Of a stretch of DNA of 64,000 nt, positions 893 to 13,496 are shown one piece after another. The notes under the pieces are model-generated. The model did no database searches. It was given only the letters and a program-made list of their open reading frames with translations, and had not been told where the DNA came from. The stretch spans positions 310,001 through 374,000 of the IMG/VR virus record IMGVR_UViG_3300034073_003340; one strand, 5' to 3'. The position numbers were made by a program, and so were the translations under genes. Numbering within the stretch: the first letter of the stretch is position 1; every line of letters starts with the position of its first letter.

Positions 893-1135
893 ATATGACA
901 CATTTTATGATGTGTAGCTATCAACAATCTTAGCAATTGCTCGATGTCTTTGTCTATATTCTTTTGCCGAAGCATTGGCTTCAAAATCCGTTGAATGGTA
1001 GGTTCCCATAACCAAGGTCCTACAATCCTCGCTGATCATAAACCATCGGAAGCGCCCACAAGGCTGAAGCAACACTTCGATCATTTTTCACCAATAATAT
1101 GAGTGGATTATGCTCATATTTACCTGGTGTTAGTT

Positions 1136-1274
1136 TCAACGGGCAAGTTGCGAAAAGGATGTTTTTCGGTGTCCTAACCACTAGACGAACCCCGCATAAT
1201 ATAGAGCGGGGTATGGGATTCGAACCCATGTAACCGGCGTGATAAGCGATAACCCTTATCAGTCGGCCCGTTGA
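1136..1274 (-). ncRNA. Y-RNA-like element B enclosing a permuted tRNA-Asp-like module (ATC)
   Basis: TCAACGGGC-CGA...GGGTTATC / CTTGCCCGTTGA; ACCCCGC and GCGGGGT form a 7-bp acceptor stem in reversed order. Confidence 0.8.
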
Positions 1275-1682
1275 TTATTTTGGATTGCGCATCATATCCA
1301 CTGCGCCGTCAACCTCATCTAAAACCTCGAAGCCATGCTTTTTATACCAAGCCACCAAAGCTTCAGTCGAGGTATCAGCATAACCATCGGCACTGAGTTT
1401 GATAGTCACGCCATGCTTGTCGGCGAGATCGCATATGGCGCGCAAAGCTTGGGTTCCGGAACCGGAGCCTGAGCCCTGTATATCACTTAAACGAATAGAG
1501 CTATTTCCTTGACCTCGGACTTCCACCTTGGCTGATCCAATAAGTCTCTGACGATGATTGAATGGACTCTCTTGTGAGATGCTATCAAGTTCATCAAGCA
1601 ACCTCTGAGTGGGAGAATCAGGATCAGGAGTGGTCTTCCCCAATTTTATGGTTAGCTCATTTGTGATTTCATTCCAGCGCAT
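1275..1682 (-). CDS. late protein with GNAT-like domain
   Basis: Start at MRWNEITNE after TAAATA; GSGTQALRAICDLAD...LVAWYKKHGF resembles a GNAT acetyl-CoA-binding motif. Confidence 0.55.
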   Translation of the reverse strand: MRWNEITNELTIKLGKTTPDPDSPTQRLLDELDSISQESPFNHRQRLIGSAKVEVRGQGNSSIRLSDIQGSGSGSGTQALRAICDLADKHGVTIKLSADGYADTSTEALVAWYKKHGFEVLDEVDGAVDMMRNPK

Positions 1683-1693
1683 GTTGTATTTAT

Positions 1694-1764
1694 TGGCGCT
1701 CCGAGTAGGATTCGAACCTACAATAGCAGTCTTAGGAGGACCGCTCCCATCCATTGGCCGGAGC
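1694..1764 (-). tRNA. tRNA-Arg(CCT), short D-arm
   Basis: Loop CT-CCT-AA, T-arm, CCA; only 71 nt. Confidence 0.8.
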
Positions 1765-2061
1765 ATCTTTCCAAGTCAACTTAAACAACATAGCGTCTTT
1801 GGGATCCACAAAGCTGAAGCCTCGACGATGATCATCTGTGTAAAGCTTATAGGTAAAATACTTGATCTTGCGCTCTTCCAGCCAGTTGATCAATATCATC
1901 CATATGGGAGGATCCGCATATGTGTCCAACACATCTATTTCCAACATAAAGGTGACCTGTAGTTTTTCCGCAAGATCACCTAGATTGGCACGATTGCGAT
2001 TGGCTCGTATTTTCATACGAGTGTGCATATAAGGATTATGTTTGAATGGGCCTTTGAACAT
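1732..2061 (-). CDS. small protein, DAxLFKLxW family
   Basis: ORF track; C-terminal FVDPKDAMLFKLTW; tail overlaps the tRNA-Arg gene. Confidence 0.7.
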   Translation of the reverse strand: MFKGPFKHNPYMHTRMKIRANRNRANLGDLAEKLQVTFMLEIDVLDTYADPPIWMILINWLEERKIKYFTYKLYTDDHRRGFSFVDPKDAMLFKLTWKDAPANGWERSS

Positions 2062-2066
2062 TCCTT

Positions 2067-2094
2067 ATTCTAACATAGAGTAGAGAAATGTCAA
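2067..2094 (-). promoter_or_regulatory. sigma70-like promoter
   Basis: TTGACA-N16-TAGAAT just upstream of ORF 2061. Confidence 0.5.
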
Positions 2095-2096
2095 CC

Positions 2097-2173
2097 TGGC
2101 GTCCTCGAGAGGATTCGAACCTCTGACCTGAAGATTAGAAGTCTCCTGCTCTATCCAGCTGAGCTACGAGGAC
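2097..2173 (-). tRNA. tRNA-Arg(TCT)
   Basis: Canonical cloverleaf, CT-TCT-AA, CCA. Confidence 0.95.
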
Positions 2174-2179
2174 ATCAAG

Positions 2180-2869
2180 TTATTTTCTTACGATGAATTC
2201 CTTGCTATTGCCGGAATTCGTAATCCACACTATTCGGTTACGATCAATTTCGCTAGAAAAAACTTCGGCCTTGTCCAAGATTTTTTGGTTATACTCTAGA
2301 GCCCATTTTCGATCACTCAAGAGATCTTTCTTCAGGTCGTCGCCATCTGTTATAAAGCTCTTTTTGGAATTATAGATATTGTAATATTCAGGGTGTTCCC
2401 GATTTCTCACATAATAGCGACCATCGACCTTTAAAAATCCAGACTCTTCGTATTTGGAAACCAGTTGATCGATTTCTTCTTCTGATTTGACTGGTTTTAA
2501 AAGCTCTCTCCAGTTACCCGACGTTCTCATACCAGCAAAATGTTCCGCTACCCTCTTGTCAGAGCTCCAGGATTCCAAGATACCCTTTTGCCAAGTGGTG
2601 TATGAACCATCCTTGATGATACCTCTGTAGAGTGAAACTTTAGGAGGCAATGATGCTCTCACAGGAGCAAAAGCTGCCTCAATCTCTTGAGCAATCTCAT
2701 CATTGGCCTTGATATGATTTACTAAATCACCTTCGGTCCAATTCACAGTTTCCCATAAATCAATAGCCGATTGAGCTTCACGACTAAGAGTCGAGTAAGC
2801 TTTCTTGGCCAGTCCAAACACATTGCTGATCGGGGCTTTTTCGAAGATTTCTTTGTAACGCATAGCCAT
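2180..2869 (-). CDS. ADP-ribosyltransferase-like late protein (R-S-E type)
   Basis: LYRG...SWSSD..VA..FA...KEFIV motifs; TATAAATA abuts the start; N-terminus MRYKEIFE. Confidence 0.6.
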   Translation of the reverse strand: MAMRYKEIFEKAPISNVFGLAKKAYSTLSREAQSAIDLWETVNWTEGDLVNHIKANDEIAQEIEAAFAPVRASLPPKVSLYRGIIKDGSYTTWQKGILESWSSDKRVAEHFAGMRTSGNWRELLKPVKSEEEIDQLVSKYEESGFLKVDGRYYVRNREHPEYYNIYNSKKSFITDGDDLKKDLLSDRKWALEYNQKILDKAEVFSSEIDRNRIVWITNSGNSKEFIVRK

Positions 2870-2894
2870 ATTTATAGGCTAGAAGCAAACGATA

Positions 2895-3593
2895 TCACGT
2901 ACCGACTACAAAAACATCAACAGTCGTGTTAGCGTTCACCATGTTAAAAGTGGTGAGCAGACCTGAAACGTTCTGAGATTTCACATAACCTCGAATAGAG
3001 GTATTGGATGATTCCTGTCTAGATACGCTTACAAAGCATGAGTCATTGGCATTGATTCCAGATGACGCGTTTGGTCTAGCATTGGCACCAACAAACAATA
3101 CTGTTGTAAAATTGGCAGATGATATATCACAAGTCCAAACACCGTTACTGGAGGCAACTGAACCTGTCCAGAATTTCACATTGGAATCTATTAGACCGCT
3201 TGATCCAAAAGGCGTAGAGTAGCCTTTTGGGCGTCCTATCACATTCCATTGTGAACCATTGTATACTAATGAAACACCGGAATAGTTAACATTGATTACC
3301 AAAGAGGATTCACCATCAATCAGTTTTCCGTTGCCCTGAATTGTGATGTTATGAACGGCCGCATTTCCGTTGCCGTCTTTTATCTTAATCATCTTTCCCG
3401 AAGATGGATCAGAGGGAAGATTGAGCACAGTGGGAGAATTTCTCGTCACCACTACCACTGAGTTGAGCATTGAAATCAAAGTAGGGGAAGTTGTCACGAT
3501 GGCAACATCAGCAAGAACGTTGGACAGATCAGCAAGAGCTTTTTCATCCAGTGTTTCTTCTAAATCTTTGATTTGCTTGATACGGACCTGCAC
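2895..3593 (-). CDS. putative virion structural or tail-fibre-like protein
   Basis: S/T/V/G/N-rich beta sequence; TITIxGNGxxIDG...LVYNGSQW-type module typical of fibre proteins. Confidence 0.5.
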   Translation of the reverse strand: MQVRIKQIKDLEETLDEKALADLSNVLADVAIVTTSPTLISMLNSVVVVTRNSPTVLNLPSDPSSGKMIKIKDGNGNAAVHNITIQGNGKLIDGESSLVINVNYSGVSLVYNGSQWNVIGRPKGYSTPFGSSGLIDSNVKFWTGSVASSNGVWTCDISSANFTTVLFVGANARPNASSGINANDSCFVSVSRQESSNTSIRGYVKSQNVSGLLTTFNMVNANTTVDVFVVGT

Positions 3594-3731
3594 CGTGTTT
3601 CCTCTATACTATAGGTGCGATATTTTGATTATCACACCAAGATAGAGTCAGGCTCCCAATATGTCAATATTAACCCTAGGTTAACCTATCCAAAGCTCGT
3701 CTTTTGACATATTATGTGATTTGAAAAGAAT

Positions 3732-3885
3732 AAGATCCAAGGCCGGATTCCACACCCCGGCTCCAACACGGTTACCGGGTTCTCTGCCCGGACCGTCAGC
3801 CCAACAAAGCAATCACTAGCCTTGGGGGTGAGGGCTCCGGAAACCCAACCTTATCCCAATATTCATTCATGCCTTCAAGGATCTT
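3732..3885 (-). ncRNA. unassigned structured RNA candidate
   Basis: Closed by AAGATCC/GGATCTT; shares GAATATTGGG and AAGGTTGGGT with 4406-4474. Confidence 0.4.
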
Positions 3886-3934
3886 GGTGCTTTCACTGAG
3901 AATCGAACTCAATTTGTAGCCAATCTACAGAAGC
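3885..3934 (-). pseudogene. 50-nt mini-tRNA (acceptor, one arm, T-arm, CCA)
   Basis: GCTTCTGTAG start is identical to tRNA-Ile at 13161; TTCGATT T-loop; ACCA end. Confidence 0.5.
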
Positions 3935-3981
3935 ATAGTCATGAGCAGGTGGGTCAGCTTTTCAACTGACCCACCGCATGA

Positions 3982-4068
3982 TTAGATAATCATGAACAGA
4001 TGGTTGAGGATGATTGAGATCAGATATCCCAGCATCGCTTCAACGATCACGCGAATAATACACGCCAT
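3982..4068 (-). CDS. 28-aa hydrophobic peptide
   Basis: AAGGAGG SD, MACIIRVIVEAMLGYLISIILNHLFMII*. Confidence 0.6.
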   Translation of the reverse strand: MACIIRVIVEAMLGYLISIILNHLFMII

Positions 4069-4115
4069 CTTAGCACCTCCTTGAGGTTGCTACATCCGTT
4101 AAAACCTAACAAGAA

Positions 4116-4148
4116 TCAACGGATGTAAATTGTTTTAACATACATCAT
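4116..4148 (-). CDS. 10-aa leader peptide (uORF)
   Basis: AAGGAG SD, MMYVKTIYIR*; the ORF end forms one arm of a 10-bp hairpin. Confidence 0.4.
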   Translation of the reverse strand: MMYVKTIYIR

Positions 4149-4319
4149 TGTTTTCTCCTTTTTTAGGCTTCGTGATGATCTAGAGGGTAAATTACCCTCT
4201 AAGGCACAACCACGAGTCGTGCTTAGCCTTCGCTATTAATGAGTTGTTAGCCCCAACATAGCTACGATGTTACCATCGATTTCTTATCATACACAACTAA
4301 CTTTGTTGTGTCTATATTC

Positions 4320-4401
4320 TGGTGCTGACGGTGGGACTCGAACCCACGATGTGGTATGAGGCCTTACGAAAGCCTTGGAATCGCCGCTATCCGACATCAG
4401 C
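4320..4401 (-). tRNA. tRNA-Thr(CGT)
   Basis: AGGCT-TTCGTAA-GGCCT arm, extended variable loop, CCA. Confidence 0.8.
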
Positions 4402-4405
4402 AGAT

Positions 4406-4474
4406 TAGGACCCAATATTCATAGCGTCCCCGCTTTAGATGGGAGTGACCCAACCTTGCCCGCTTGGGGCCTTA
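4406..4474 (-). ncRNA. unassigned small structured RNA candidate
   Basis: AGGCCCCAA/TTGGGTCCT closing stem; motifs shared with 3732-3885. Confidence 0.35.
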
Positions 4475-4477
4475 CCT

Positions 4478-4553
4478 TGGTGCCGGCACGAGGGATCGAA
4501 CCCCGGGCCTCAAGATTACAAATCTAGCGCTCTACCAACTGAGCTATACCGGC
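4478..4553 (-). tRNA. tRNA-Thr(TGT)
   Basis: Canonical, TT-TGT-AA, CCA. Confidence 0.92.
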
Positions 4554-4685
4554 ATGTGAGTGGTCCAATGTCTGTTGCCAGCACAGTCCCTTAGGGACTT
4601 CATTGGACCACTGATTTGTGTTTAACAAAAGTGGCCACCTTTGTCAAACTAAAACATTAGCCAGTACATCCGTGGTCTAATGTTT

Positions 4686-4756
4686 TGGAGCCCCAACTAG
4701 GATTCGAACCTAGCCTCCAGCGTTCGAAGCGCCGGGTCCCATCCATGGGCTGGGGC
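4686..4756 (-). tRNA. tRNA-Arg(TCG), short D-arm
   Basis: CGGCG-CTTCGAA-CGCTG arm, CCA, 71 nt. Confidence 0.82.
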
Positions 4757-4757
4757 A

Positions 4758-5054
4758 TTACGCCGGACAGCGATCAAAAACCAACTTGAACGCCATCGCA
4801 TGTCGTTTTTCCATGAACCAGATTTCCATCTGGTCACCTATACCTTCTTCTATTGGGGTATCAACCCAATAGTCGCCGCGTGGGCCAACCATTCTATTGA
4901 GCCATTCTTCAGTTTCTGGTTTCATCCAACGATGCCTAGTCAAGTATTGCTTGAGAGTCATTGTTGGATGATTTTTAAAAGGTTCATAGAATCGATCTGT
5001 TTCAGCTTCGGATAGTTCAAAAACGTATCCGCCTTCATCTTCATAAAGATTCAT
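4758..5054 (-). CDS. small protein, DAxLFKLxW family
   Basis: AGGAGG SD; C-terminal WFMEKRHAMAFKLVF. Confidence 0.75.
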   Translation of the reverse strand: MNLYEDEGGYVFELSEAETDRFYEPFKNHPTMTLKQYLTRHRWMKPETEEWLNRMVGPRGDYWVDTPIEEGIGDQMEIWFMEKRHAMAFKLVFDRCPA

Positions 5055-5105
5055 AAGTCACCTCCTACACCCAGATTATAACCAGGTGTAAGAGATGTCA
5101 ACACC

Positions 5106-5375
5106 TTACTTTTCAGAAAGTGGCTGAGTAGTGGCATATCGCAGCAAAGCGGTAATAATACCAACTACTGTCAGGATAACACCGCTATGCTCACCCATAA
5201 GGGCCTGCATCGAAGGCAAATAAATTTGAAGGGCGCCAAAAATAGTCAGTGCCGTTGAAAACCAAATCGTCTTAGACTTGGCCGCTTTGATTAGCCATGT
5301 CTTAGCGTTAATCCCCATTGCCTGAAGCATATCAAGATATGGGATAACATTTGGTTCTTTGCTTGGTTCAGTCAT
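5106..5375 (-). CDS. two-TM membrane protein, possibly holin-like
   Basis: Two hydrophobic segments, AAGGAG SD, TAAATA upstream. Confidence 0.5.
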   Translation of the reverse strand: MTEPSKEPNVIPYLDMLQAMGINAKTWLIKAAKSKTIWFSTALTIFGALQIYLPSMQALMGEHSGVILTVVGIITALLRYATTQPLSEK

Positions 5376-5418
5376 AGTCGATCTCCTTGTCAGAGTGTCG
5401 ACTATTTACCGCAATGGT

Positions 5419-5491
5419 ATATGGGCAAGTTGGTGGCCAGGGGCTTGGTTCAAAGTTTGAGTTTGATAACCCTGAGCCGTCCGGCCCATAT
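5419..5491 (-). ncRNA. Y-RNA-like element G (no tRNA module)
   Basis: ATATGGGC-CGG...GGGTTATC / CTTGCCCATAT. Confidence 0.7.
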
Positions 5492-5493
5492 TT

Positions 5494-5570
5494 TGGTTGC
5501 GGAGGACGGATTCGAACCGCCGACCTTTAGGTTATGAGCCTAACGAGCTACCAGGCTGCTCCACCCCGCG
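5494..5570 (-). tRNA. tRNA-fMet(CAT)
   Basis: C1:A72 mismatch, CT-CAT-AA, CCA. Confidence 0.92.
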
Positions 5571-5614
5571 TCAATACGATTAGCAAGAACTGTTTCTTGT
5601 GTCAATAATTTTTG

Positions 5615-5803
5615 TGGAGACGACGGGATTCGAACCCGCACGAAAAGCTGACCCAAGCATTACCAAGGGCTGGTGTGTAGGTTCAAAGACTCGTCGCGAG
5701 CCTATAAAAAATATCCCACACCATCTTACGCAACCTTTCAGGTTTTACCCTGAATCGCGGTCTTGTCTTTTGCGATTGCCTGTCCCTCTAGGCGGACGTC
5801 CCC
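5615..5803 (-). ncRNA. tmRNA-like or tRNA-Ala-like RNA with a ~115-nt internal domain
   Basis: Acceptor GGGGACG/CGTCTCC with G3:U70 and A73; T-arm GCGGG-TTCGAAT-CCCGT; no anticodon arm. Confidence 0.55.
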
Positions 5804-5829
5804 ATGTAGTGAATTTTTAGTCTACCAGG

Positions 5830-5902
5830 TACAGGGTGGGAGAATCGAACTCCCTTCTTCCGATTTTCAGCCGGCCGCATTGACCACAGTTGCTTACCCT
5901 GC
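5830..5902 (-). tRNA. tRNA-Phe(GAA)
   Basis: CT-GAA-AA loop; CCA not encoded. Confidence 0.85.
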
Positions 5903-5922
5903 ATGAGGGAGTAGACTCGCGC

Positions 5923-6291
5923 CTACTCCCCTTCGAACTTTGCCTTTAAGGCTTCGTAGAGCTTTCGCTCTTCGTCGTCCTTTTTCAGCTTCTTTGCGAG
6001 GGCGGTTGCTCGTCTCTTTTCAGCGGCAATCGCAGCTTTTGCCTTTTTGGCTTTCAGCTTTTCAATTCGCGTTTCATATTCATCATCCGTCTCCAGACGA
6101 TTACATGACAGACGAATTGTTACCTCACAATCATCATAATACCAGTTGGTTTCGACGTAGAGTTCTAAACCCTCGCCATACTGGGCTATGAGATCCGCCA
6201 GTTTGTAGGTTTCATGCGTGTTGAGGATTTCAACAGTATGTGATACATTCCGACGGGCAAGTTCTTTTTCGTTCAAATCAACCATATTCAC
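5923..6291 (-). CDS. hypothetical protein
   Basis: AGGAGG SD, basic coiled-coil C-terminus. Confidence 0.7.
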   Translation of the reverse strand: MNMVDLNEKELARRNVSHTVEILNTHETYKLADLIAQYGEGLELYVETNWYYDDCEVTIRLSCNRLETDDEYETRIEKLKAKKAKAAIAAEKRRATALAKKLKKDDEERKLYEALKAKFEGE

Positions 6292-6334
6292 CTCCTATTC
6301 CAACACAAAAGGATAGAGGTTTCCAAGGTATCAT

Positions 6335-6410
6335 TGGAGGCCCCAGTGGGAATCGAACCCACATAGATCCGCTTTGCAGGCGGTCACAATTCCCATTCTG
6401 TCATGGGGCC
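6335..6410 (-). tRNA. tRNA-Cys(GCA)
   Basis: CT-GCA-AA, U73, CCA. Confidence 0.88.
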
Positions 6411-6431
6411 ATGTTGCTGTTCAAAACAGCT

Positions 6432-6505
6432 TGGAGCGGGTGAAGGGAATCGAACCCTCGTCTTCAGCTTGGAAGGCTGTAATAATACCATTATACGACA
6501 CCCGC
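6432..6505 (-). tRNA. tRNA-Gly(TCC)
   Basis: CT-TCC-AA, U73, CCA. Confidence 0.92.
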
Positions 6506-6508
6506 GTG

Positions 6509-6670
6509 TCAGGTCTTCTTTGAGATGCCAAAACACCTGAGAAGCTTTGCCAAAAAGGGATGGCGCTCACTGAAGGTCAGCGGTCGAAACCAACAGTAAT
6601 CGTGAGCAATACCCTCACGAGTATCACAGCACCATTCTCCGTTTTCATCATAGTGATGATCTAGGTTCAT
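6509..6670 (-). CDS. small hypothetical protein
   Basis: Start MNLDHHYDENGEWCC after an AGAGG SD, lying between two tRNAs. Confidence 0.45.
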   Translation of the reverse strand: MNLDHHYDENGEWCCDTREGIAHDYCWFRPLTFSERHPFLAKLLRCFGISKKT

Positions 6671-6685
6671 CAAAGCCTCTTTGGT

Positions 6686-6763
6686 TGGAGCGGGTAACGG
6701 GAATCGAACCCGTCTCTTCACCATGGCAAGGTGACATAATCCAGACCAATATACTATACCCGC
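6686..6763 (-). tRNA. tRNA-Gly(GCC)
   Basis: TT-GCC-AT, U73, CCA. Confidence 0.9.
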
Positions 6764-6769
6764 GTGTTC

Positions 6770-6990
6770 AATCTTGAAGATCCGTAGCCGCGATCTTGTT
6801 CTATGCTACAATCTACCTACCTGAATATCACTATTCAAGTGCCTCGCCATTATGCGATGAGACCTTATTGGTCTCCGGCTGCGCCAACCCGACCATATAG
6901 CTGAAGGATTGCCATGGTCTGTTTGGCTTGCTGGCTTAATCACGGTGGTCTCTTCCCTTGTGCTGGTCTATTCGCCCAACTCCCACTCGT
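6770..6990 (-). ncRNA. rnpB: RNase P RNA, 3' piece
   Basis: P15 GCCAA/TTGGC with L15 GGU, P16 GACCAT/ATGGTC, P18 with GUGA loop, and the 3' strands of P2 (TGTAGC), P4 (TCGCGGCT) and P1 (CAAGATT). Confidence 0.8.
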
Positions 6991-7590
6991 TCACTTCTTA
7001 CGGTTTGTTTTTCTGGCCTTAATCAACTGAGAAGCTTTCTCTTTTCCGTGAATTTCTACTAGGGTTTTACCCTTTAGTTTGGCTCTGATATTATCTCCCC
7101 AACCCTCAGGGACCGTTCTCCCTTTAGACCACCCTTGCTTAGTCCAAGTATCAAGCTCATCCGACTTGATCTTTTTATTACCAAGTTCTGGATGAGTGAT
7201 CCATATAGATCCAAATTGGGTATTGTTAGAACCAACACCGACTTGTTTTAGTTGTCGGGTAGATTGTCTCTTCTTCTGAGCTTGTGGCGTTTGAGCAAAC
7301 TTTCGAGCAAATTCATACCCGCCGTCACCGCCCTTTGTCAAATTATAGGTATCAGTGCGGGCTACAAACTCTTCTGTAACGACCTCTTTCTCTTTCAGAT
7401 ACATTTCTGATCTTGAAGAAAAATTTTCTAGAACCTCCTTTTGAAAGTTCTCGATACCATACTTGGCAATAGCTGACTTGATAAGTTCTCCTGAACCCAT
7501 ATAGCCATCGTCTAAATCAGTAGTTGAATGAACCCCGATATAGATCTTGCCATTAATGAGATTGGTGATCTTGTAGAGTATGTAATTCAT
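6991..7590 (-). CDS. GIY-YIG homing endonuclease (Seg-like)
   Basis: YILYKITNLINGKIYIGVH...YMGSG...KYG.ENF.KEVLE...E...YN motifs; own TAAATA box. Confidence 0.9.
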   Translation of the reverse strand: MNYILYKITNLINGKIYIGVHSTTDLDDGYMGSGELIKSAIAKYGIENFQKEVLENFSSRSEMYLKEKEVVTEEFVARTDTYNLTKGGDGGYEFARKFAQTPQAQKKRQSTRQLKQVGVGSNNTQFGSIWITHPELGNKKIKSDELDTWTKQGWSKGRTVPEGWGDNIRAKLKGKTLVEIHGKEKASQLIKARKTNRKK

Positions 7591-7601
7591 ACTCTATTTA
7601 C

Positions 7602-7658
7602 CTCGTCGCGAACTTCCTCAAAAGCTTTCGCTCCTGCTGTAGCTCGACCTGCAAGATT
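7602..7658 (-). ncRNA. rnpB: RNase P RNA, 5' piece
   Basis: P1 AATCTTG, P2 GCTACA, P3 GGAGC-GAAA-GCTTT and CR-I-like GAGGAAGTTCGCGA, each pairing with the 3' piece. Confidence 0.8.
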
Positions 7659-7731
7659 GGTACGCCCACGAAGACTCGAACTCCGATAAACCGGTAATCG
7701 GCCGGTTGCCTTACCATTAGACGATGGGCGC
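7658..7731 (-). tRNA. tRNA-Ile(GAT), atypical C33
   Basis: ACCGG-CCGATTA-CCGGT arm, T-arm, CCA. Confidence 0.65.
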
Positions 7732-7735
7732 AAGC

Positions 7736-7919
7736 TTGATTCAAAAAGCGTGGCTTGGTTCCCCGTTTCAAGCACCACAAGCGACTCTATACCAATACTC
7801 CGCCGGAGCATTCAGTGCGCAACTCTGACTCTACCAGGTTCAAATCCTGGTCATAATATTCAGCAACCATACCCACGAGACCTTTGATGTCTGCGAAGGT
7901 ATCACGCTTTTTGAATCAA
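7736..7919. ncRNA. 184-nt region closed by a 17-bp inverted repeat
   Basis: TTGATTCAAAAAGCGTG/CACGCTTTTTGAATCAA. Confidence 0.4.
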
Positions 7920-7954
7920 TTGAATATAACAAAGGACATGGCCTTTGTCAACAT

Positions 7955-8028
7955 TGGAGCGGATAGGGAGAATCGAACTCCCCTAACTACGTTGGCAACG
8001 TAACGCATTACCACTATGCTATACCCGC
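7955..8028 (-). tRNA. tRNA-Gly(GCC)
   Basis: TT-GCC-AA, U73, CCA. Confidence 0.9.
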
Positions 8029-8195
8029 ATGGTATTTGCTGACCGGAACCTCTCGCCAACAGCGCAAGCTCACCACACTTCCGTGCCCGGCCATCTTGCC
8101 ATTTTTGCTCGACCGCTAGGTAGTCTGTGCCTCTAAAGGTTTCACATCCTACATCAGCAGATTTGTTCTAACAAATCGTAATCAATTTGTCAATC

Positions 8196-8274
8196 TGGGG
8201 TGACCGGCGGGAATTGAACCCAGCACCTTCGGCTTCACAGGCCGCTATCCACAAACCAGTAGACCACGGTCACC
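8196..8274 (-). tRNA. tRNA-His(GTG)
   Basis: G-1:C73, CT-GTG-AA, CCA. Confidence 0.9.
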
Positions 8275-8281
8275 ATACAGA

Positions 8282-8692
8282 TCAGAGGGCTTTGCCCGTC
8301 CTCGCATCAACAATTCTTACTCCTGGAAAAACTGCTAGGCTACCACTTTCTCCACCTTGGAAATAAGCGTCGTATCCTTTTGCTCGGAGTTCTCTAAAAA
8401 ACCCCGGTATCTTTTCCATTTCACCATAATACTCTTCTATTTCATCCTCTGTGGGATAGTAGATATTATGAACATCCAAATAGCAAGCATAGGTTTCGGC
8501 CAAATTGTCCCCGTAGATTTTCTCACCCCAAGTGGGCGAATCAGAGAACCATAAACCAGCATCTGGTATCTTGAACTTGGTAATATTCTTGGTATTACTA
8601 CCATGATACATGACGCTCTTGACCTTGGAGCCAGAGAACGGATTTGGAACAAACTGCTCCGAATCTTCACCAATGATTTGTTTCCATCGCAT
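8282..8692 (-). CDS. ADP-ribosyltransferase-like late protein
   Basis: MYHGS...F...GLWFSDSP..(IY)G motifs; TAAATA-N4-ATG; N-terminus MRWKQIIGE. Confidence 0.55.
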   Translation of the reverse strand: MRWKQIIGEDSEQFVPNPFSGSKVKSVMYHGSNTKNITKFKIPDAGLWFSDSPTWGEKIYGDNLAETYACYLDVHNIYYPTEDEIEEYYGEMEKIPGFFRELRAKGYDAYFQGGESGSLAVFPGVRIVDARTGKAL

Positions 8693-8705
8693 TGAATATT
8701 TATTC

Positions 8706-8793
8706 TGCTGAGCGCGGAGTCGAACCGCCTACCGTTTATGGCATCGCCCATCACTTCTTATTGATTCGTACTGGCCCGGCCAGCTACTCAGCA
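8706..8793 (-). pseudogene. tRNA-like RNA without a recognisable anticodon arm
   Basis: TGCTGAG/CTCAGCA acceptor and GGCGG-TTCGACT-CCGC T-arm. Confidence 0.5.
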
Positions 8794-8870
8794 TGGCCCT
8801 CTGGACGGGACTCGAACCCGCCTCGACCCGGCGTGACAAGCCAGCGGCGTCACCCGACGCCTCCCAGAGG
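8794..8870 (-). tRNA. tRNA-Asp(GTC)
   Basis: CTGGC-TTGTCAC-GCCGG arm, G73, CCA. Confidence 0.9.
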
Positions 8871-8924
8871 ATATGGTTTTCTGCTCTCAGAATGTCACGC
8901 CTAGTTTCAGCGGCGTTCCCTCGG

Positions 8925-8997
8925 TGGAGACTAGGGGGATCGAACCCCTGACCTACGCAATGCCATCGCGTCGCTCTCCCAGCTGAGCTAAGTCCCC
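8925..8997 (-). tRNA. tRNA-Ala(GGC)
   Basis: G3:U70, AT-GGC-AT loop. Confidence 0.9.
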
Positions 8998-9007
8998 ATG
9001 GGAGGGG

Positions 9008-9632
9008 TCACAAGGACCCCTTGGCTAGGATCAGTCTTTCTAGACCAATTGCCCAGCCAACACCTTCGGCGTATCTACCGCCTCCAGCGATTTGTTTTTG
9101 CGCGCCAAGCTGCTCGCATACGCCTTCGAATCCATCCTCTATATAATAGGATAATCCGCGTTTTACAGCGTCATTGAGCTGCCACTCGACCCCTTGAGAG
9201 TCAATACAGCGTCGCAGTAGCTCAACAACTTCGTCGCGGTCCTCAGGGCCCTGTGAGCCCAGATACTCTACGCCAAATTGTATGAACTCCCGATACCGGC
9301 CTGCTTGTGGGCGCTCGTATCGGTAACAACGACTCACATAGAAGATCTTTAGTGTCTTTTCTGTGTGTCGCCATTTTTCTCGCCAGAGCTCTTGGATGAG
9401 CCCGGTGACTTCGGGAATCAAGCAAACATCTCGACCTCCCTTATCCTGGAAGGCCCACATTTGATTGATTATCTCTGGACCGGCTTTGTCGATGAAAGTC
9501 TGTTGTTCCCATATTGCGGGCAGAATAACCTCGTTGAAACCAGCTTCAGTGAACCAACCCCCTCAAGGAGTTGATTACATTGGTCATTTCACGGGCGTCG
9601 TCGCCCATGAGGACCCTTGTTCCCCTTAGCAT
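9008..9632 (-). CDS. hisS: histidyl-tRNA synthetase catalytic core only, frameshifted at a G5 run (9558-9562)
   Basis: MLRGTRVL, then after the shift GFNEVILP (motif 1), CYRYERPQAGRYREF (motif 2) and GGGRY...AIGLERL (motif 3); no anticodon-binding domain. Confidence 0.75.
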
Positions 9633-9668
9633 AAATCACCTCTTGTTTTCAGCGACCCTAATGGTCGT

Positions 9669-9742
9669 TGGATGCCCCTCTAGGGATCGAACCTAGGTTA
9701 CAACATTCAAAGTGTCGTGTCTTACCATTAGACGAAGGGGCA
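9669..9742 (-). tRNA. tRNA-Gln(TTG)
   Basis: CT-TTG-AA, CCA. Confidence 0.9.
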
Positions 9743-9753
9743 ATGTAGAGACC

Positions 9754-9813
9754 TGAGCAAGTTGATGCGGCGAGGGGTTCATCACCAAAAGATAACCCTC
9801 ATGCTTCGGCTCA
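9754..9813 (-). ncRNA. Y-RNA-like element C (no tRNA module)
   Basis: TGAGC-CGA-AGCATGAGGG-TTATC...CCCTCG...CAACTTGCTCA. Confidence 0.7.
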
Positions 9814-9819
9814 AATCTA

Positions 9820-9895
9820 TGGCTCCGGAGGAGGGACTCGAACCCCCAACATCCTCGTTAACAGCGAGGCGCATCTACCATTGAGCTACTCCGGA
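9820..9895 (-). tRNA. tRNA-Asn(GTT)
   Basis: CT-GTT-AA, G73, CCA. Confidence 0.92.
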
Positions 9896-9899
9896 ATGA

Positions 9900-10015
9900 A
9901 TATGAGCAAGTTTTGTAAAGGACTTTCCCAGTTGCCTGGGGTGATGGATTTGAACCATCTAGTTTTGATTTGAAGTCAAAAGTTTTTCCGATAACCCTTT
10001 ACTATCGGCTCATAT
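9900..10015 (-). ncRNA. Y-RNA-like element D with a TCA anticodon arm, T-arm and loop-closed acceptor
   Basis: ATATGAGC-CGA...GGGTTATC / CTTGCTCATAT; TTTTGA-CTTCAAA-TCAAAA arm. Confidence 0.75.
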
Positions 10016-10088
10016 GGCGCCCTCGGGAGGATTCGAACCTACCTCATCTTCCCTTCGCAGGGGAAGTGCATGATCCACATGCGAGGGC
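10015..10088 (-). tRNA. tRNA-Arg(GCG), short D-arm
   Basis: TTCCC-CTGCGAA-GGGAA arm, CCA. Confidence 0.8.
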
Positions 10089-10093
10089 ATTAG

Positions 10094-10165
10094 TAGTCCC
10101 GTGGTGACTCGAACACCAATCCGCCCTTTATGAGAGGGTGGCACTAACCTTTGTGCTACAGGACC
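10094..10165 (-). tRNA. tRNA with CAT anticodon (Met or Ile2)
   Basis: CT-CAT-AA loop with paired position 1. Confidence 0.8.
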
Positions 10166-10168
10166 ATA

Positions 10169-10244
10169 TGGTGAACCGGGCGGGACTCGAACCCGCGACC
10201 AGCTGATTAAAAGTCAGCTGCTCTACCGACTGAGCTACCGGTCC
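10169..10244 (-). tRNA. tRNA-Lys(TTT)
   Basis: Canonical, CT-TTT-AA, CCA. Confidence 0.95.
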
Positions 10245-10300
10245 ACTCCAGCTCTCTTTAGCTAAAGATTTCCGTTAGTCAAAGATTTTTCTTACACCAA

Positions 10301-10753
10301 CTACTTTAAAATCACCGGTATGTTCATTTTCTTAGCCAGATCTTCAACCTGGTCTCGAAAATATTCATCATCGTCCTGTCCACCTTCGTCTCTTATCCAT
10401 ATCTCCTTGACTGTAGAGGAGTTTATTGGATAAAGAGGTGATGGTTCTATCACCGTTTCATCTTCGGGACGGGTCCCCAAAATGATTCGGACTTCATCCC
10501 AACGATCAACCACTTGCGTTTCAAAACCCTTGGGGGCTTTTAGCACAAATGTCACATTGGCTGAATTCTTTACACCACCAGAGAACCAAAGATTGGGATC
10601 AGTAGTGGTTGAAACAAAATATTCAACATTGCGATCATGGTCGATGTCGTCATAGCTGGTATGGATGCCACCGTCTCTTAATATTGAAAGGGCAGGCCTC
10701 ATATCAGTAGCATGATACAAAACACCGCCAGTCAAGACTTCATATAACCGCAT
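10301..10753 (-). CDS. ART-fold-like late protein
   Basis: LYHAT...SIL..GG...FVSTTTDP...DEVRI; TAAATA-N5-ATG; N-terminus MRLYEVL. Confidence 0.5.
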   Translation of the reverse strand: MRLYEVLTGGVLYHATDMRPALSILRDGGIHTSYDDIDHDRNVEYFVSTTTDPNLWFSGGVKNSANVTFVLKAPKGFETQVVDRWDEVRIILGTRPEDETVIEPSPLYPINSSTVKEIWIRDEGGQDDDEYFRDQVEDLAKKMNIPVILK

Positions 10754-10765
10754 ATCTGTATTTAT

Positions 10766-10841
10766 TGGTGGGAGCCGTGGGGATTGAACCCACCTCGTTC
10801 TGCTTGTAAAACAGATGTCATCACCAGATGGCTAGACTCCC
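10766..10841 (-). tRNA. tRNA-Val(TAC)
   Basis: TT-TAC-AA, CCA. Confidence 0.88.
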
Positions 10842-10842
10842 A

Positions 10843-10917
10843 TGGTAGTCGGTGAGGGTTTCGAACCCCCGACCCTCTCGGTGTAAACGAGATGCTCTAC
10901 CACTGAGCTAACCGACC
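10843..10917 (-). tRNA. tRNA-Val(TAC)
   Basis: TT-TAC-AC, CCA. Confidence 0.92.
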
Positions 10918-10957
10918 ATGTTATCAACATAAACAATCCTATTTGGAATGTCAATAT

Positions 10958-11040
10958 TGGTGGGAAGCAATGGAGTCGAACCATTCCCCGAAAGCGCGGT
11001 TTTACAGACCGCTTGCTAGAACCGCTAGCTTTTACTTCCC
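10958..11040 (-). tRNA. tRNA-Tyr(GTA)
   Basis: GCGGT-CTGTAAA-ACCGC, CCA. Confidence 0.88.
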
Positions 11041-11054
11041 ATATTTGTAATCAG

Positions 11055-11126
11055 TAGCGCGGACGGGAATCGAACCCGCTTACACCTGGGTGAAAACCAA
11101 GCCGCCTGCCATTAGCGTTCCGCGCC
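11055..11126 (-). tRNA. tRNA-Glu(TTC)
   Basis: TT-TTC-AC loop; CCA not encoded. Confidence 0.8.
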
Positions 11127-11137
11127 ATGAAGTATTG

Positions 11138-11209
11138 TGACCCATAGGGGGATCGAACCCCTGTTCTCGCCTTGAAAGGGCGCGCTCTTAACCATTAGAG
11201 GAATGGGCC
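11138..11209 (-). tRNA. tRNA-Glu(TTC)
   Basis: CT-TTC-AA loop; ends CAA. Confidence 0.88.
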
Positions 11210-11240
11210 GTGTGGGCAAATACCCTGCTGACTTACAGCT

Positions 11241-11315
11241 TGGTGGACGATACAGGGATTGAACCTGTGACCTTTCCCATGTCAAGGGAACGCGCTACCG
11301 CTGCGCCAATCGTCC
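11241..11315 (-). tRNA. tRNA-Val(GAC)
   Basis: TTCCC-TTGACAT-GGGAA, CCA. Confidence 0.92.
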
Positions 11316-11318
11316 ATA

Positions 11319-11984
11319 TCAAGCAAACAAGGAATTTTTTGCTTGAATCTTATTACCATTTGAATCAATACCTGGATACCCGTGATTCTGTAAAATCACA
11401 TGGGCCGCTGCCTTGAGACGCAACCTCGGGAAATCTTTGGTATAGAGGATCAAAGAGTAGGTTAGCTTTTCTTCACAACCGCCACCTGATCCAGTATTGA
11501 TTCCGATCCTTTTTAGGTGGTCAGAATGAATTAAATGCTTTCGGTAAACATTTCCTTTGGGGCGAATTATAATCTTGCCCTCCCAACCCGCTTCCGGAAC
11601 GTGGGGTGACTCACTACTCCAACCAGTTTCTTTCTGACCAATAGGAGAAGTGTGGGTCGTTGGACAAAGTGGGTTGAAGTTCAAATTTGAGATTTCAAAT
11701 TCAACATAATCACTAGCGGTTGGATAATAGGGATTTTTAGCTTCCCAACGTGGTCCAAAGTGTATGGCGATCTTCATGTAATTGGCTGTCAGCCACTCCG
11801 CAATTGCGTTAGTGGTATCCAGACAATACAAAGACTTCAAAAACTCATCGAACTCAAGAGCCAACTTGGACTGTTCGCGCTTGAAGCGCAAATCAAAACG
11901 AGTTCGCTTCAAGTGCTCAGCATATTCACTGGAGCACTCAAAAAGCTTACCGGTCCAAGGGCACTTGTTAACAATTACCTTCAT
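11319..11984 (-). CDS. hypothetical protein
   Basis: 221-aa ORF filling the gap between tRNAs. Confidence 0.75.
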   Translation of the reverse strand: MKVIVNKCPWTGKLFECSSEYAEHLKRTRFDLRFKREQSKLALEFDEFLKSLYCLDTTNAIAEWLTANYMKIAIHFGPRWEAKNPYYPTASDYVEFEISNLNFNPLCPTTHTSPIGQKETGWSSESPHVPEAGWEGKIIIRPKGNVYRKHLIHSDHLKRIGINTGSGGGCEEKLTYSLILYTKDFPRLRLKAAAHVILQNHGYPGIDSNGNKIQAKNSLFA

Positions 11985-12020
11985 GCCAACTGAGTAGCAT
12001 AAAAAGACCAGTTGTCAACA

Positions 12021-12107
12021 TGGTTGCAGAGGTGGGATTTGAACCCACGTAGCCTTTCGGCAGCCTCGGTTATGAGCCGAGCGAGATAACCACTCCTCTA
12101 CCCTGCG
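12021..12107 (-). tRNA. initiator-like tRNA(CAT) with a long variable arm
   Basis: C1:A72, CT-CAT-AA, GCC-GAAA-GGC variable stem, CCA. Confidence 0.8.
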
Positions 12108-12109
12108 AG

Positions 12110-12182
12110 TGCAACCAGTTGGAATCGAACCAACGACACGCGCATTTTCAGTGCGCTGCTCTACCTGCTGAGCTATGGTTAC
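12110..12182 (-). tRNA. tRNA-Phe(GAA)
   Basis: GCGCA-CTGAAAA-TGCGC. Confidence 0.9.
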
Positions 12183-12183
12183 A

Positions 12184-12259
12184 TGGACCTAACAGGGGCA
12201 TTTCAGCCCTCACTTTCTGACCAGCGTGGCGGTCAGCCGTGCCTCTTACACTAGTTAGG
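12184..12259 (-). pseudogene. tRNA-like RNA, 8-nt anticodon loop, non-canonical T-loop
   Basis: CCTAAC/GTTAGG acceptor, CTGACC-GCCACGCT-GGTCAG, CCA. Confidence 0.5.
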
Positions 12260-12262
12260 ATT

Positions 12263-12339
12263 TGGTGCCGACACCTGGAATCGAACCAGGAAAATCACCC
12301 TTATGAGAGGTAATAGGAGACCGCCTCCTTCCTACCGGC
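12263..12339 (-). tRNA. tRNA with CAT anticodon (Met or Ile2)
   Basis: CT-CAT-AA, CCA. Confidence 0.78.
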
Positions 12340-12345
12340 AAAGTT

Positions 12346-12420
12346 TGGCACGGGTGGAGGGATTCGAACCCTCTCTGCATGGTTTTGGAGACCAGCCGAC
12401 TACCAGTATCATACACCCAT
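12346..12420 (-). tRNA. tRNA-Trp(CCA)
   Basis: CT-CCA-AA, G73, CCA. Confidence 0.88.
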
Positions 12421-12435
12421 ATGAAAGATTTTTAG

Positions 12436-12506
12436 CAGGGCCAGTAGGAATCGAACCCACAAGAGCTGGTTTGGAGCCAACCATGATACCATTTCATCAT
12501 AACCCT
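12436..12506 (-). tRNA. tRNA-Trp(CCA)
   Basis: CT-CCA-AA, G73. Confidence 0.85.
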
Positions 12507-12529
12507 ATAGGTCAGAAAAGCTGACACAG

Positions 12530-12598
12530 TGGAAGCCTGGGATTTGAACCCACCAAACGGCTTTTATTCACCGTCATGCACCAAAACATCTGGCCCCC
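12530..12598 (-). pseudogene. tRNA-like RNA, Ala-type acceptor, 8-nt loop
   Basis: GGGGGCC/GGCTTCC-A, ACGGT-GAATAAAA-GCCGT, TTCAAAT T-loop. Confidence 0.5.
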
Positions 12599-12626
12599 AT
12601 GGAGGACGGATAGTAATCCGTCTTTG

Positions 12627-12697
12627 CGCAGCATGGGGGAATCGAACCCACCACCTCCAGGATTCCGCCTGGTATGCTAAACCTACAACATAGCCGC
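12627..12697 (-). pseudogene. tRNA-like RNA, 6-nt anticodon loop (Pro-like)
   Basis: CCAGG-CGGAAT-CCTGG, TTCGATT T-loop, imperfect acceptor. Confidence 0.45.
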
Positions 12698-12698
12698 A

Positions 12699-12783
12699 TG
12701 GTGGGTAGGTGCGGAATCGAACCACTCCCCGAAGGATCTGATTTACAGTCAGACTGCCGTATCCAAGACGACTTTACCTACCC
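12699..12783 (-). tRNA. tRNA-Tyr(GTA)
   Basis: TCTGA-CTGTAAA-TCAGA, variable arm, CCA. Confidence 0.88.
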
Positions 12784-12787
12784 ATAG

Positions 12788-12867
12788 AGGACCAGGTGGG
12801 ACTCGAACCCACGATGTATAATAGCCGGTTAAAAGCCGACGCCGATCGCCGCTACGGTGACTGGTCC
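12788..12867 (-). tRNA. tRNA-Lys(TTT)
   Basis: CT-TTT-AA, extended variable loop. Confidence 0.8.
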
Positions 12868-12873
12868 AAAGAT

Positions 12874-12951
12874 TGGTCAGGGTGAGAGGACTCGAACCTC
12901 CACGATGTCCTCCTTCCAAAGGAGACGACTTACCAATTAGTCCACACCCTG
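12874..12951 (-). tRNA. tRNA-Pro(TGG)
   Basis: TT-TGG-AA, C1-G72, CCA. Confidence 0.9.
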
Positions 12952-13087
12952 ATGTGGTCAAGACTTGCTAGATATATTGCTGTCCCGCATGGGACACCTG
13001 CCCGTCGGGGAGTCGAACCCTTCCGGTTGGGGACTTGAACCCCGCTTCACCCTAGCACCTACCCACTCGGTAGCTTTCGCTAAGTCT

Positions 13088-13161
13088 TGGTGCTTCAGCA
13101 AGGAATCGAACCTTGGTCGTGCCATTATCAGTGGCGTGCTCTACCATTGAGCTACAGAAGC
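13088..13161 (-). tRNA. tRNA-Ile(GAT)
   Basis: CT-GAT-AA, CCA. Confidence 0.92.
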
Positions 13162-13166
13162 ATGAT

Positions 13167-13294
13167 CGATGAGCAAGGAGGTGTGCTAGGAGATTGACTA
13201 GGTCCTACCCCGGCCCTCATTGTGGACCGGCCGAGACTCGAACTCGGATCGTTTGTTTCACAGACAAAGATAACCTAACGCTATCGGCTCATCG
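13167..13294 (-). ncRNA. Y-RNA-like element E enclosing a permuted tRNA-His-like module (GTG)
   Basis: CGATGAGC-CGA...GGTTATC / CTTGCTCATCG; TTTGT-CTGTGAA-ACAAA arm, T-arm, CCGGTCC then GGGCCGG. Confidence 0.8.
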
Positions 13295-13295
13295 G

Positions 13296-13378
13296 TGCGG
13301 ATGACTGGACTCGAACCAGCACGCCACTAGGGCACCGCCTTCTGAGGACGGCAAGTCTACCAATTTCATCACATCCGC
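13296..13378 (-). tRNA. tRNA-Leu(CAG)
   Basis: CT-CAG-AA, long variable arm. Confidence 0.9.
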
Positions 13379-13400
13379 ATGTAAAAGGCTTGTGAACCTT

Positions 13401-13477
13401 TGGTGCTCCCCGTGGGACTCGAACCCACACTGAACGGAGTTTGAACCCGCTGACTCTACCAATTGGCCTAGAGGAGC
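13401..13477 (-). tRNA. tRNA-Leu(CAA), short variable arm
   Basis: TT-CAA-AC, CCA. Confidence 0.85.
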
Positions 13478-13496
13478 ATGACACTGGCTAACAGCT

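Follow-up and report, generated by a model that had tools for sequence, protein, structure and literature searches.

A predicted miniaturised RNase P RNA gene in a giant phage, interrupted by a free-standing homing-endonuclease gene

A 436-kb phage carries, inside its array of about 50 tRNA genes, a shrunken homologue of the tRNA-trimming ribozyme RNase P, and a GIY-YIG homing-endonuclease gene has recently inserted into the middle of that copy, probably crippling it. The analysed window comprises 64,000 nt of the IMG/VR record IMGVR_UViG_3300034073_003340 (record positions 310,001 to 374,000), and all coordinates below are window positions. On the minus strand, between tRNA-Ile and tRNA-Gly, a 68-nt piece and a 221-nt piece flank a 199-aa ORF and pair across it as P1, P2 and P4. 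The initial annotation had described these pairings, and every structural element it listed is present in the sequence. Its interpretation, a ribozyme that either tolerates a 600-nt coding loop or assembles from two pieces, is only partly supported. The identity of the flanks and the absence of an intron hold, whereas continued function is not supported as stated.

Structure of the interrupted locus

The 5' piece begins with the P1 5' strand (7658-7646): AAUCUUG at 7658-7652 pairs with CAAGAUU at 6776-6770, and GGUC at 7649-7646 pairs with GAUC at 6782-6779, the P1 3' strand occupying 6782-6770. P2 is formed by GCUACA(G) at 7643-7637 and (U)UGUAGC at 6811-6805. A P3 hairpin with a GAAA loop follows at 7635-7620. 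The CR-I and P4 5' strand, GAGGAAGUUCGCGAC, occupies 7619-7605, the counterpart of E. coli 61-75. Within it, AG-U-UCGCGA pairs with UCGCGGCU at 6793-6786, giving 8 bp with one bulged U (7614-7606/6793-6786).

The 3' piece opens with a reduced specificity domain (6990-6945), in which the helix GUGG (6986-6983)/CCAC (6948-6945) encloses a hairpin (6980-6962) and an A-rich stretch. In place of a specificity domain with T-loop recognition elements (P7-P12, CR-II/III), only this helix, hairpin and A-rich segment remain, with no established equivalence to P10-P12. The following region (6944-6931) holds two orphan 3' strands, CGUG (6944-6941, a weakly supported P7-like helix) and CCAG (6934-6931, P5), whose 5' partners were deleted by the insertion. 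Next come the J5/15 CAA (6930-6928) and a P15/L15/P16 module (6927-6883) with P15 GCC/GGC, L15 AAACA/GGGUU (6890-6886 on the 3' side, containing the GGU that binds tRNA CCA in bacteria) and the P16 hairpin at 6919-6891. Three lineage-specific hairpins lie between P15 and J18/2 (6875-6820). They are absent from short family members, and the last (6839-6820) has a GUGA loop of the GNRA type and is P18-like. J18/2 and the P2 3' strand occupy 6819-6805. The J18/2 sequence is UAGGUAGAUUG, whereas short members have AGAUGAAUG, as in E. coli 328-336. The CR-V/J2-4 segment, AUAGAACAAGA, and the P4 3' strand occupy 6804-6786. Position 6796 is A, where all other members and E. coli (G350) have G.

Comparison with intact alleles corrects the initial annotation on two points. 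Native RNA sequence ends at 7605 (GCGAC) and resumes at 6992 (GAACGAG, overlapping the stop codon), so that 14 nt of cassette leader precede the ATG and not 11. Of the ACGAG repeats found at both junctions (7606-7602 and 6990-6986), only the 3' one is native. The initial annotation also missed that 10 native nucleotides (UGGCGUGGRG) are deleted, including 3 of the 4 nt of the P5 5' strand. We searched the ORF and the leader for a substitute CUGG strand and found none.

Uninterrupted relatives and the RNase P assignment

More than 27 uninterrupted relatives, the kind of allele whose existence had been proposed as a check, are found in the tRNA arrays of large phages. Loci L009, L056, L124 and 24 others join the two halves directly, and only the window and one further locus, L149, in a second phage, are interrupted. 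One intact copy is in the cultured Stenotrophomonas phage DLP6 (KU682439.2, about 105,775-106,020), where it is unannotated. The helices covary in 27 uninterrupted relatives: 90.3% of cells are paired, against 29-38% with partners slid, 35 of 48 pairs have compensatory changes, and 0 of 500 shuffles reach the observed score. Covariation supports P1, P2 (98.9% paired, 6 of 7 pairs compensatory), P3, P5 (at least 10 pair variants), P15 and P16 in canonical order, while P4 is 100% paired and invariant in 27 members. The 15-mer GAGGAAGUUCGCGAC is invariant in 26 of 27 intact relatives. For the window's own copy, P5 is lacking.

The RNase P assignment rests on homology to the shorter members of the family. 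In these, the Rfam archaeal model (RNaseP_arch, RF00373) matches over model positions 1-288 at 18.7-51.4 bits, with E down to 3.8e-12, in eight loci (seven distinct RNAs, since L127 and L129 hold the same RNA). A further locus, L106, scores 26.1 bits, for a total of nine loci and eight distinct RNAs. All scores fall below the gathering score of 84. The window gave no RNase P hit at gathering or E-value thresholds, and neither did the intact long forms of DLP6 and L009, the closest intact long-form allele, at E<=10. No match to a bacterial model was displayed, as only the best family of the RNase P clan is listed and this was the archaeal one. A model of the family (R1) finds held-out long forms at 122-157 bits. 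In E. coli, its best hit is inside rnpB in the correct register, although the match is weak (8.7 bits, E 0.0017). A MAFFT alignment with rnpB misplaced the 5' half, and only its 3' third is usable.

Conserved nucleotides coincide with those of E. coli M1 RNA. The CR-I (GAGGAAAGUCC-like) and CR-V (ACAGAA..GGCU-like) nucleotides flanking P4 match E. coli 61-74 and 347-360. CAA, GGGU, AGAUGAAUG and ACAGAA line up with A248, G292-U294, 328-336 and 347-352, respectively. CAA and (C)GGGU(U), conserved in nearly all members and present in the window, are aligned by R1 to E. coli 247-249 and 291-294; their roles are inferred from sequence alone. The order P1-P2-P3-P4-P5 ... P15/L15/P16 ... J18/2-P2'-P4'-P1', the bulged U of P4 and GAGGAA-G-U in CR-I are likewise shared with this bacterial type A RNA. 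By contrast, the phage RNAs measure 190-290 nt against 377, their specificity domain is cut to one helix plus one hairpin, P6/P17, P13 and P14 are lacking, P18 is absent in short forms, and the genes lie in phage tRNA arrays. As in the reduced type T RNA of Thermoproteaceae, the specificity domain is strongly reduced while the catalytic domain is kept. However, one cultured member has a bacterial host, and the J18/2 and L15 sequences look bacterial.

We searched the window for a second RNase P RNA copy, by motif with 3 mismatches and with R1, and found none; R1 scores only the 3' piece (53.8 bits). Exhaustive IMG/VR scans for the CR-V motif and for the long-form S-domain motif each found one locus in this contig. 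An earlier IMG/VR scan with a 15-mer returned mostly chance matches, and loci L120 and L121 from a second scan are chance matches in GC-rich coding DNA.

The endonuclease cassette

The ORF (7590-6991) encodes a predicted SegB-like GIY-YIG homing endonuclease: it matches phrog_314 at 1e-40 and PF19835 (SegE_GIY-YIG) at 27.2 bits (cut-off 25), falls below the cut-off for PF01541, and matches T-even segB by blastn. Its GC content is 40.5%, against 46% for the window. The leader (7604-7591) contains a Shine-Dalgarno-like GAGG and a TAAATA box (7600-7595). An ATAAATA box also lies upstream of related endonuclease genes in other phages, consistent with the T4 late-promoter paradigm (PMC2988022). A perfect 9-bp hairpin (7596-7574; centroid -10.1 kcal/mol, z -2.6), also formed in the full fold, has the AUG in its 5' arm and probably blocks translation on read-through transcripts. 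Relatives of the endonuclease sit between tRNA genes in other phages; none of the homologues examined lies in or next to an RNase P RNA gene, a weak motif hit in locus L150 being coding sequence.

The cassette is a very recent arrival. Between the window and L149 there are 0 differences over 632 nt, against 17 in the 584 nt upstream and about 22 in the 285 nt downstream, so that an identical cassette lies between flanks differing by 3-8%. This indicates recent homing. Two of five long-form alleles in IMG/VR carry the cassette at the identical site, and alleles with and without it occur in the same metagenome, 3300034072.

The interrupted alleles also carry substitutions at otherwise invariant core positions. 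Three of the 10 substitutions between them hit columns invariant in all others, against 5 of 259 in nine intact pairs (Fisher p = 0.002). The test is partly biased, as intact alleles were retrieved by exact matches covering the CR-V motif, which affects column 385. In addition to the A at the G350 equivalent in the window, L149 has changes in P4 and next to it. A recently arrived cassette and accumulated core substitutions in both alleles are hard to reconcile in one simple history.

Interpretation and comparison with known systems

We favor, with moderate confidence, the reading that the flanks are the two halves of a miniaturised phage RNase P RNA gene, from a newly recognised family that standard Rfam annotation does not detect. 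In this reading, a mobile cassette of TAAATA box, AUG-hiding hairpin and 600-nt ORF inserted directly after the invariant CR-I/P4 5' strand and replaced 10 nt carrying the 5' strands of P5 and of the next helix. Our data demonstrate the homology, the intact alleles, the boundaries of insertion and deletion, and the recent spread of the cassette. It is by inference that the endonuclease would cut intact alleles at the highly conserved site GAGGAAGUUCGCGAC-UGGCGUGGRG-AACGAGUGGGAG and copy itself in during co-infection with short conversion tracts. The catalytic competence of the whole family, that is, cleavage of pre-tRNA 5' leaders, is likewise inferred. Less certain is the inference that the interrupted RNA is impaired or dead as a ribozyme, which the phage would tolerate because the host's own RNase P processes its tRNAs, the element persisting by drive and not by benefit. 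Loss or impairment of function, listed in the initial annotation only as a refutation, is at least as likely as the continued activity it inferred.

A working ribozyme is not excluded, but this remains a tentative possibility. It could act as one roughly 0.9-kb RNA, both endonuclease mRNA and a ribozyme lacking P5, with the untranslated ORF looped out between P4 and the specificity domain, or as two fragments held together by P1, P2 and P4 after the mRNA part is cut or degraded. P1 (11 bp), P2 (7 bp) and P4 (8 bp), about 27 bp in total, still pair across the ORF, and the catalytic core strands, J5/15 and L15 are intact. Both the MFE and centroid folds keep P1, as does the fold of the whole 897 nt, and cofolding of the two pieces pairs their ends, although the predicted association energy is modest without P4 (-5.6 kcal/mol). 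The AUG-hiding hairpin would keep ribosomes off read-through RNA. Both phages assemble as large contigs, so the allele is not lethal. M1 RNA can be reconstituted from fragments in vitro, and catalytic domains alone retain some activity. Against this reading stand the loss of the P5 5' strand, a helix kept by compensatory changes in every intact relative, the core substitutions, and the arrival of the cassette too recently for selection to have vetted the arrangement. Were it correct, this would be the first ribozyme known to be split by an intron-less mobile element and still working, in a family whose smallest members (about 190 nt) would be among the smallest RNase P RNAs of bacterial design.

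It is unlikely that the family derives from RNase P RNA but is not catalytic, acting as a decoy for host RnpA or pre-tRNAs or as a processing spacer in the tRNA operon, in which case interruption would matter little. The scores below Rfam gathering thresholds and the drastically reduced specificity domain are compatible with this view. A precedent exists in camelpox virus, a eukaryotic virus, whose RNA resembling bacterial or archaeal RNase P RNA showed no pre-tRNA processing activity in vitro (PMC3001073); that RNA is not in a tRNA array and has no sequence relation to this family. However, the invariant P4 with its bulged U, J5/15 CAA, the L15 GGU and the ACAGAA segment are conserved far beyond what a spacer needs.

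A cryptic intron or self-cleaving element that removes the ORF is very unlikely. Homing endonuclease genes in RNA genes are normally housed in group I introns, but here only 14 nt of non-native sequence lie upstream of the ORF and none downstream, and an Rfam search of 6764-7660 in E-value mode (E<=10) found no group I or II intron and no small self-cleaving ribozyme. The junctions are direct repeats and not complementary, so no bulge-helix-bulge motif can form, and exact excision could not restore P5. An unrelated RNA that merely resembles RNase P is equally unlikely: the window and its closest intact alleles lack Rfam hits, but nine homologous loci match RNaseP_arch significantly over its full length, and topology and conserved nucleotides coincide with E. 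coli rnpB.

Large phages with tRNA arrays appear to carry their own strongly reduced RNase P RNA, missed by routine annotation: a study that ran all Rfam models on megaphage genomes reported only tRNAs and a tmRNA (PMC8172020), and our literature searches, which did not cover subscription journals, found no description of a phage-encoded RNase P RNA. If active, these RNAs would show how far a bacterial-type RNase P can be pared down, and would add tRNA 5' maturation to the functions phages bring with them. The interrupted allele is a natural experiment on whether RNase P tolerates a break after P4 and the loss of P5, and shows how selfish elements erode or remodel accessory phage genes, here by invading a ribozyme gene at its most conserved sequence without the protection of an intron.

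T4 SegB is a free-standing endonuclease of the same family in the same niche among tRNA genes, and shares a late-promoter-like box and an RNA hairpin that limits translation (PMC2988022). However, T4 segB sits between tRNA genes, whereas here the cassette sits inside a structured RNA gene and removed part of it. In Aeromonas phage Aeh1, the intron-less endonuclease gene mobE similarly splits nrdA at a conserved site (PMC3045599), but the halves of that protein gene reassemble into an active enzyme, while here a helix strand of a ribozyme was deleted and reassembly is unproven. Endonucleases encoded in group I introns (I-TevI and those in rRNA or tRNA genes) also target the most conserved part of a gene, with late-promoter and hairpin control of expression. 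In the present case no intron ribozyme is present, and the host RNA cannot be restored by splicing.

A sigma-70-like promoter (7951-7923; TTGACA-17-TATATT, TG extension, 11/12), identified by consensus match only, lies upstream of tRNA-Ile and could drive one transcript covering tRNA-Ile, the split RNA with its ORF, and tRNA-Gly. The tRNA-Ile(GAT) gene (7731-7658; ARAGORN and Rfam) has an encoded CCA, and its 3' end abuts the start of P1. The tRNA-Gly(GCC) gene (6763-6686; ARAGORN) starts 6 nt after P1. RNase P cleavage of its leader would trim the RNA's own 3' end. The same tight spacing is found in 14 of 29 family loci.

Structure and genomic setting of the interrupted gene

The interrupted gene lies on the minus strand of a 436-kb IMG/VR phage contig (IMGVR_UViG_3300034073_003340); locus L076 is 100% identical. 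It sits inside a run of co-oriented tRNA genes (484-16031, minus strand), of which ARAGORN predicts about 50 and Rfam at the gathering score 41, covering most anticodon families with duplicates (3 Val, 4 Met, 4 Lys). Read 5' to 3', tRNA-Ile (7731-7658) is followed by a 68-nt piece (7658-7591), a 199-aa ORF (7590-6991), a 221-nt piece (6990-6770) and, after 6 nt, tRNA-Gly (6763-6686). A strong sigma-70-like promoter match (7951-7923) precedes tRNA-Ile. Small ORFs are interspersed in the tRNA array. One of them, a 150-aa ORF (9008-9460, minus strand), matches the histidyl-tRNA synthetase core (PF13393 at 5.9e-15, profile positions 55-144 of 308), but is far too short for a full synthetase and is therefore a fragment or a HisZ-like remnant. 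A 136-aa ORF between tRNA genes (8282-8692, minus strand) has a sub-threshold match to the ADP-ribosyltransferase domain of polyvalent proteins (PF18760, 26.6 bits against a cut-off of 31.2).

The initial annotation described an RNase P RNA gene split by an intron-less GIY-YIG endonuclease gene, and this observation holds: both its anatomy and its headline are right, and the case appears to be new. All of the named pairings are present, including P1 (7+4 bp), P2 (6-7 bp), P4 (8 bp with one bulged U), a P15/L15/P16 module with GGGUU, a GUGA-capped hairpin and the ACGAG repeat. The ORF is a GIY-YIG homing endonuclease, matching PF19835 at 27.2 bits and phrog_314 at 1e-40, while blastn matches T-even segB genes.

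To search for uninterrupted alleles, we scanned a 15-mer from the 5' piece and a 20-23-mer from the 3' piece through IMG/VR, JGI metagenomes and GTDB genomes. In every true homologue except two, the two motifs lie 134-214 nt apart with no ORF between them. The closest relatives (loci L009, L056, L124, L126 and L141) show 82-92% identity to the flanks and read GCGAC-UGGCGUGGRG-AACGAG, where the window reads GCGAC, a 14-nt leader with the ORF, and (U)GAACGAG. The cassette therefore replaced 10 native nucleotides, and only 14 non-native nucleotides lie outside the ORF. No intron or ribozyme family in Rfam matches the region. The only hit among 185,579 reference genomes is L147 (JANXME010000285.1), a 2.3-kb contig of an Actinomycetes MAG that carries tRNA genes and is probably phage DNA binned into a MAG. 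The family seems absent from cellular genomes, at least with this exact motif.

A predicted phage family of reduced RNase P RNAs

Rfam finds no RNase P RNA in the window, nor in the intact long-form alleles of L009 and of the cultured Stenotrophomonas phage vB_SmaS-DLP_6. By contrast, the shorter family members match RF00373 (archaeal RNase P) across the whole model, with scores of 51.4 (L144), 49.3 (L136), 42.2 (L147), 36.0 (L131), 32.3 (L139), 26.1 (L106), 24.9 (L135), 21.3 (L127) and 18.7 bits (L129). The best E-value is 3.8e-12, although all of these scores are below the gathering score of 84. An alignment of 27 distinct members supports an RNase P-type fold: 90.3% of cells are paired, against 29-38% with partners slid, and 35 of 48 pairs have compensatory changes. 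The covariation score is 0.469 against 0.128 in shuffles, and 0 of 500 shuffles reach it. P2 and P15 were also found blind by RNAalifold. P5 shows at least ten compensatory versions, including CUGG/CCAG, CUCU/AGAG, CUCC/GGAG, CUGC/GCAG, CACAC/GUGUG, AACC/GGUU, CUAC/GUAG and CAUC/GAUG, whereas P4 is invariant.

Several conserved single-stranded segments coincide with E. coli rnpB: GAGGAAGUU with positions 61-69, CAA with C247-A249, GGGU with G291-U294, AGAUGAAUG with 328-336 and ACAGAA with 347-352. A covariance model built from 18 short members recovers held-out medium and long forms at 122-157 bits. Its top hit in a 1-kb E. coli locus is inside rnpB in the right register, though the match is weak (8.7 bits, E 0.0017). 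We conclude from these sequence and covariation data that the family is a reduced RNase P RNA with a near-complete catalytic domain and a vestigial specificity domain, while catalysis itself remains an inference from the sequence. The wider result of this analysis is the phage RNase P RNA family itself.

Members of the family are co-oriented with tRNA genes. In 14 of 29 loci a tRNA starts 13-19 nt after the CR-V motif, which is a few nt after P1, and in about 10 loci a tRNA ends just before P1. In this arrangement the RNA would be released from the tRNA precursor by the tRNA-processing enzymes, RNase P included. We found no published description of a phage RNase P RNA; a study that ran Rfam on megaphages saw only tRNAs and a tmRNA (PMC8172020), and a camelpox RNase P-like RNA is the only viral precedent we found (PMC3001073). 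The member in phage vB_SmaS-DLP_6 (L187:2461-2705; KU682439.2, about 105,774-106,018) is intact and unannotated, lies just upstream of tRNA-Arg and scores 157.3 bits with the family covariance model, which makes this cultured phage a ready experimental system.

Recent mobility of the endonuclease cassette

A second phage contig (L149, IMGVR_UViG_3300034072_000973) carries the same ORF at the same site, in surroundings about 92.5% identical to the window. The two phages show no difference at all over 632 nt, covering window positions 7607-6976: the leader, the ORF and 15 nt beyond. By contrast, there are 17 differences in the 584 nt upstream and about 22 in the 285 nt downstream. At the lower flank rate about 18 differences would be expected, so the probability of this identity arising by chance is about 1e-8. 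Intact alleles (L009, L124) occur in the same metagenome as L149, and the GC content of the ORF is 40.5%, against 46% for the window; both observations fit a mobile cassette.

Relatives of the endonuclease (39-65% identity) sit between tRNA genes in other phages. In one of these arrays, ARAGORN calls a permuted tmRNA (L152:3815-4235) about 0.5 kb downstream of the endonuclease homologue. Most of the related endonuclease genes, found in diverse phage tRNA arrays (L150-L159), carry a conserved, T4 late-promoter-like ATAAATA box 5-28 nt upstream of the start, and in several it lies only 5-7 nt from the start codon, which would give nearly leaderless mRNAs. The window has TAAATA at 7600-7595, and a perfect 9-bp hairpin (7596-7574) contains the AUG. 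This is the late-promoter-plus-hairpin arrangement described for I-TevI and T4 segB (PMC2988022), and implies that translation occurs only from transcripts that start inside the hairpin. The insertion point lies right after the most conserved 15-mer of the family, in agreement with the usual habit of homing endonucleases of targeting invariant sequence, although the actual cleavage site is inferred.

Functional state of the split RNA

The initial annotation inferred that the ribozyme either tolerates the coding loop or assembles from two pieces; this inference is not supported as stated, and the evidence on function leans towards a disrupted gene. The 5' strand of P5 is missing, and so is that of a weaker neighbouring helix, and the ORF contains no CUGG. 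The host supplies RNase P, so the gene would be dispensable. We consider impairment or loss of function somewhat more likely than not. Retained function is possible but doubtful: P1, P2 and P4 still pair, J5/15, L15 and the P4 strands are present, predicted folding of the 897-nt RNA keeps P1, and the two pieces could anneal. The hidden AUG would also keep ribosomes off read-through transcripts.

Substitutions in the interrupted alleles also speak against function. Three of the 10 substitutions separating the two interrupted alleles fall on columns invariant in all other members, against 5 of 259 in nine intact pairs (p = 0.002). One of these columns (385) is biased by the retrieval pattern, and without it the contrast is 2 of 9. 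A very recent cassette and core substitutions in both alleles do not fit one simple history. The window has A at 6796, where all 27 intact members, L149, the DLP_6 phage and E. coli (G350) have G. L149 has C>U in the P4 5' strand (7608) and C>U after the P4 3' strand (6784). Among the intact alleles, the only natural variant of the CR-I 15-mer is found in one family member (L139:790-805), which has GAGGAAGCUCGCGAC, with C instead of the first U next to the P4 bulge.
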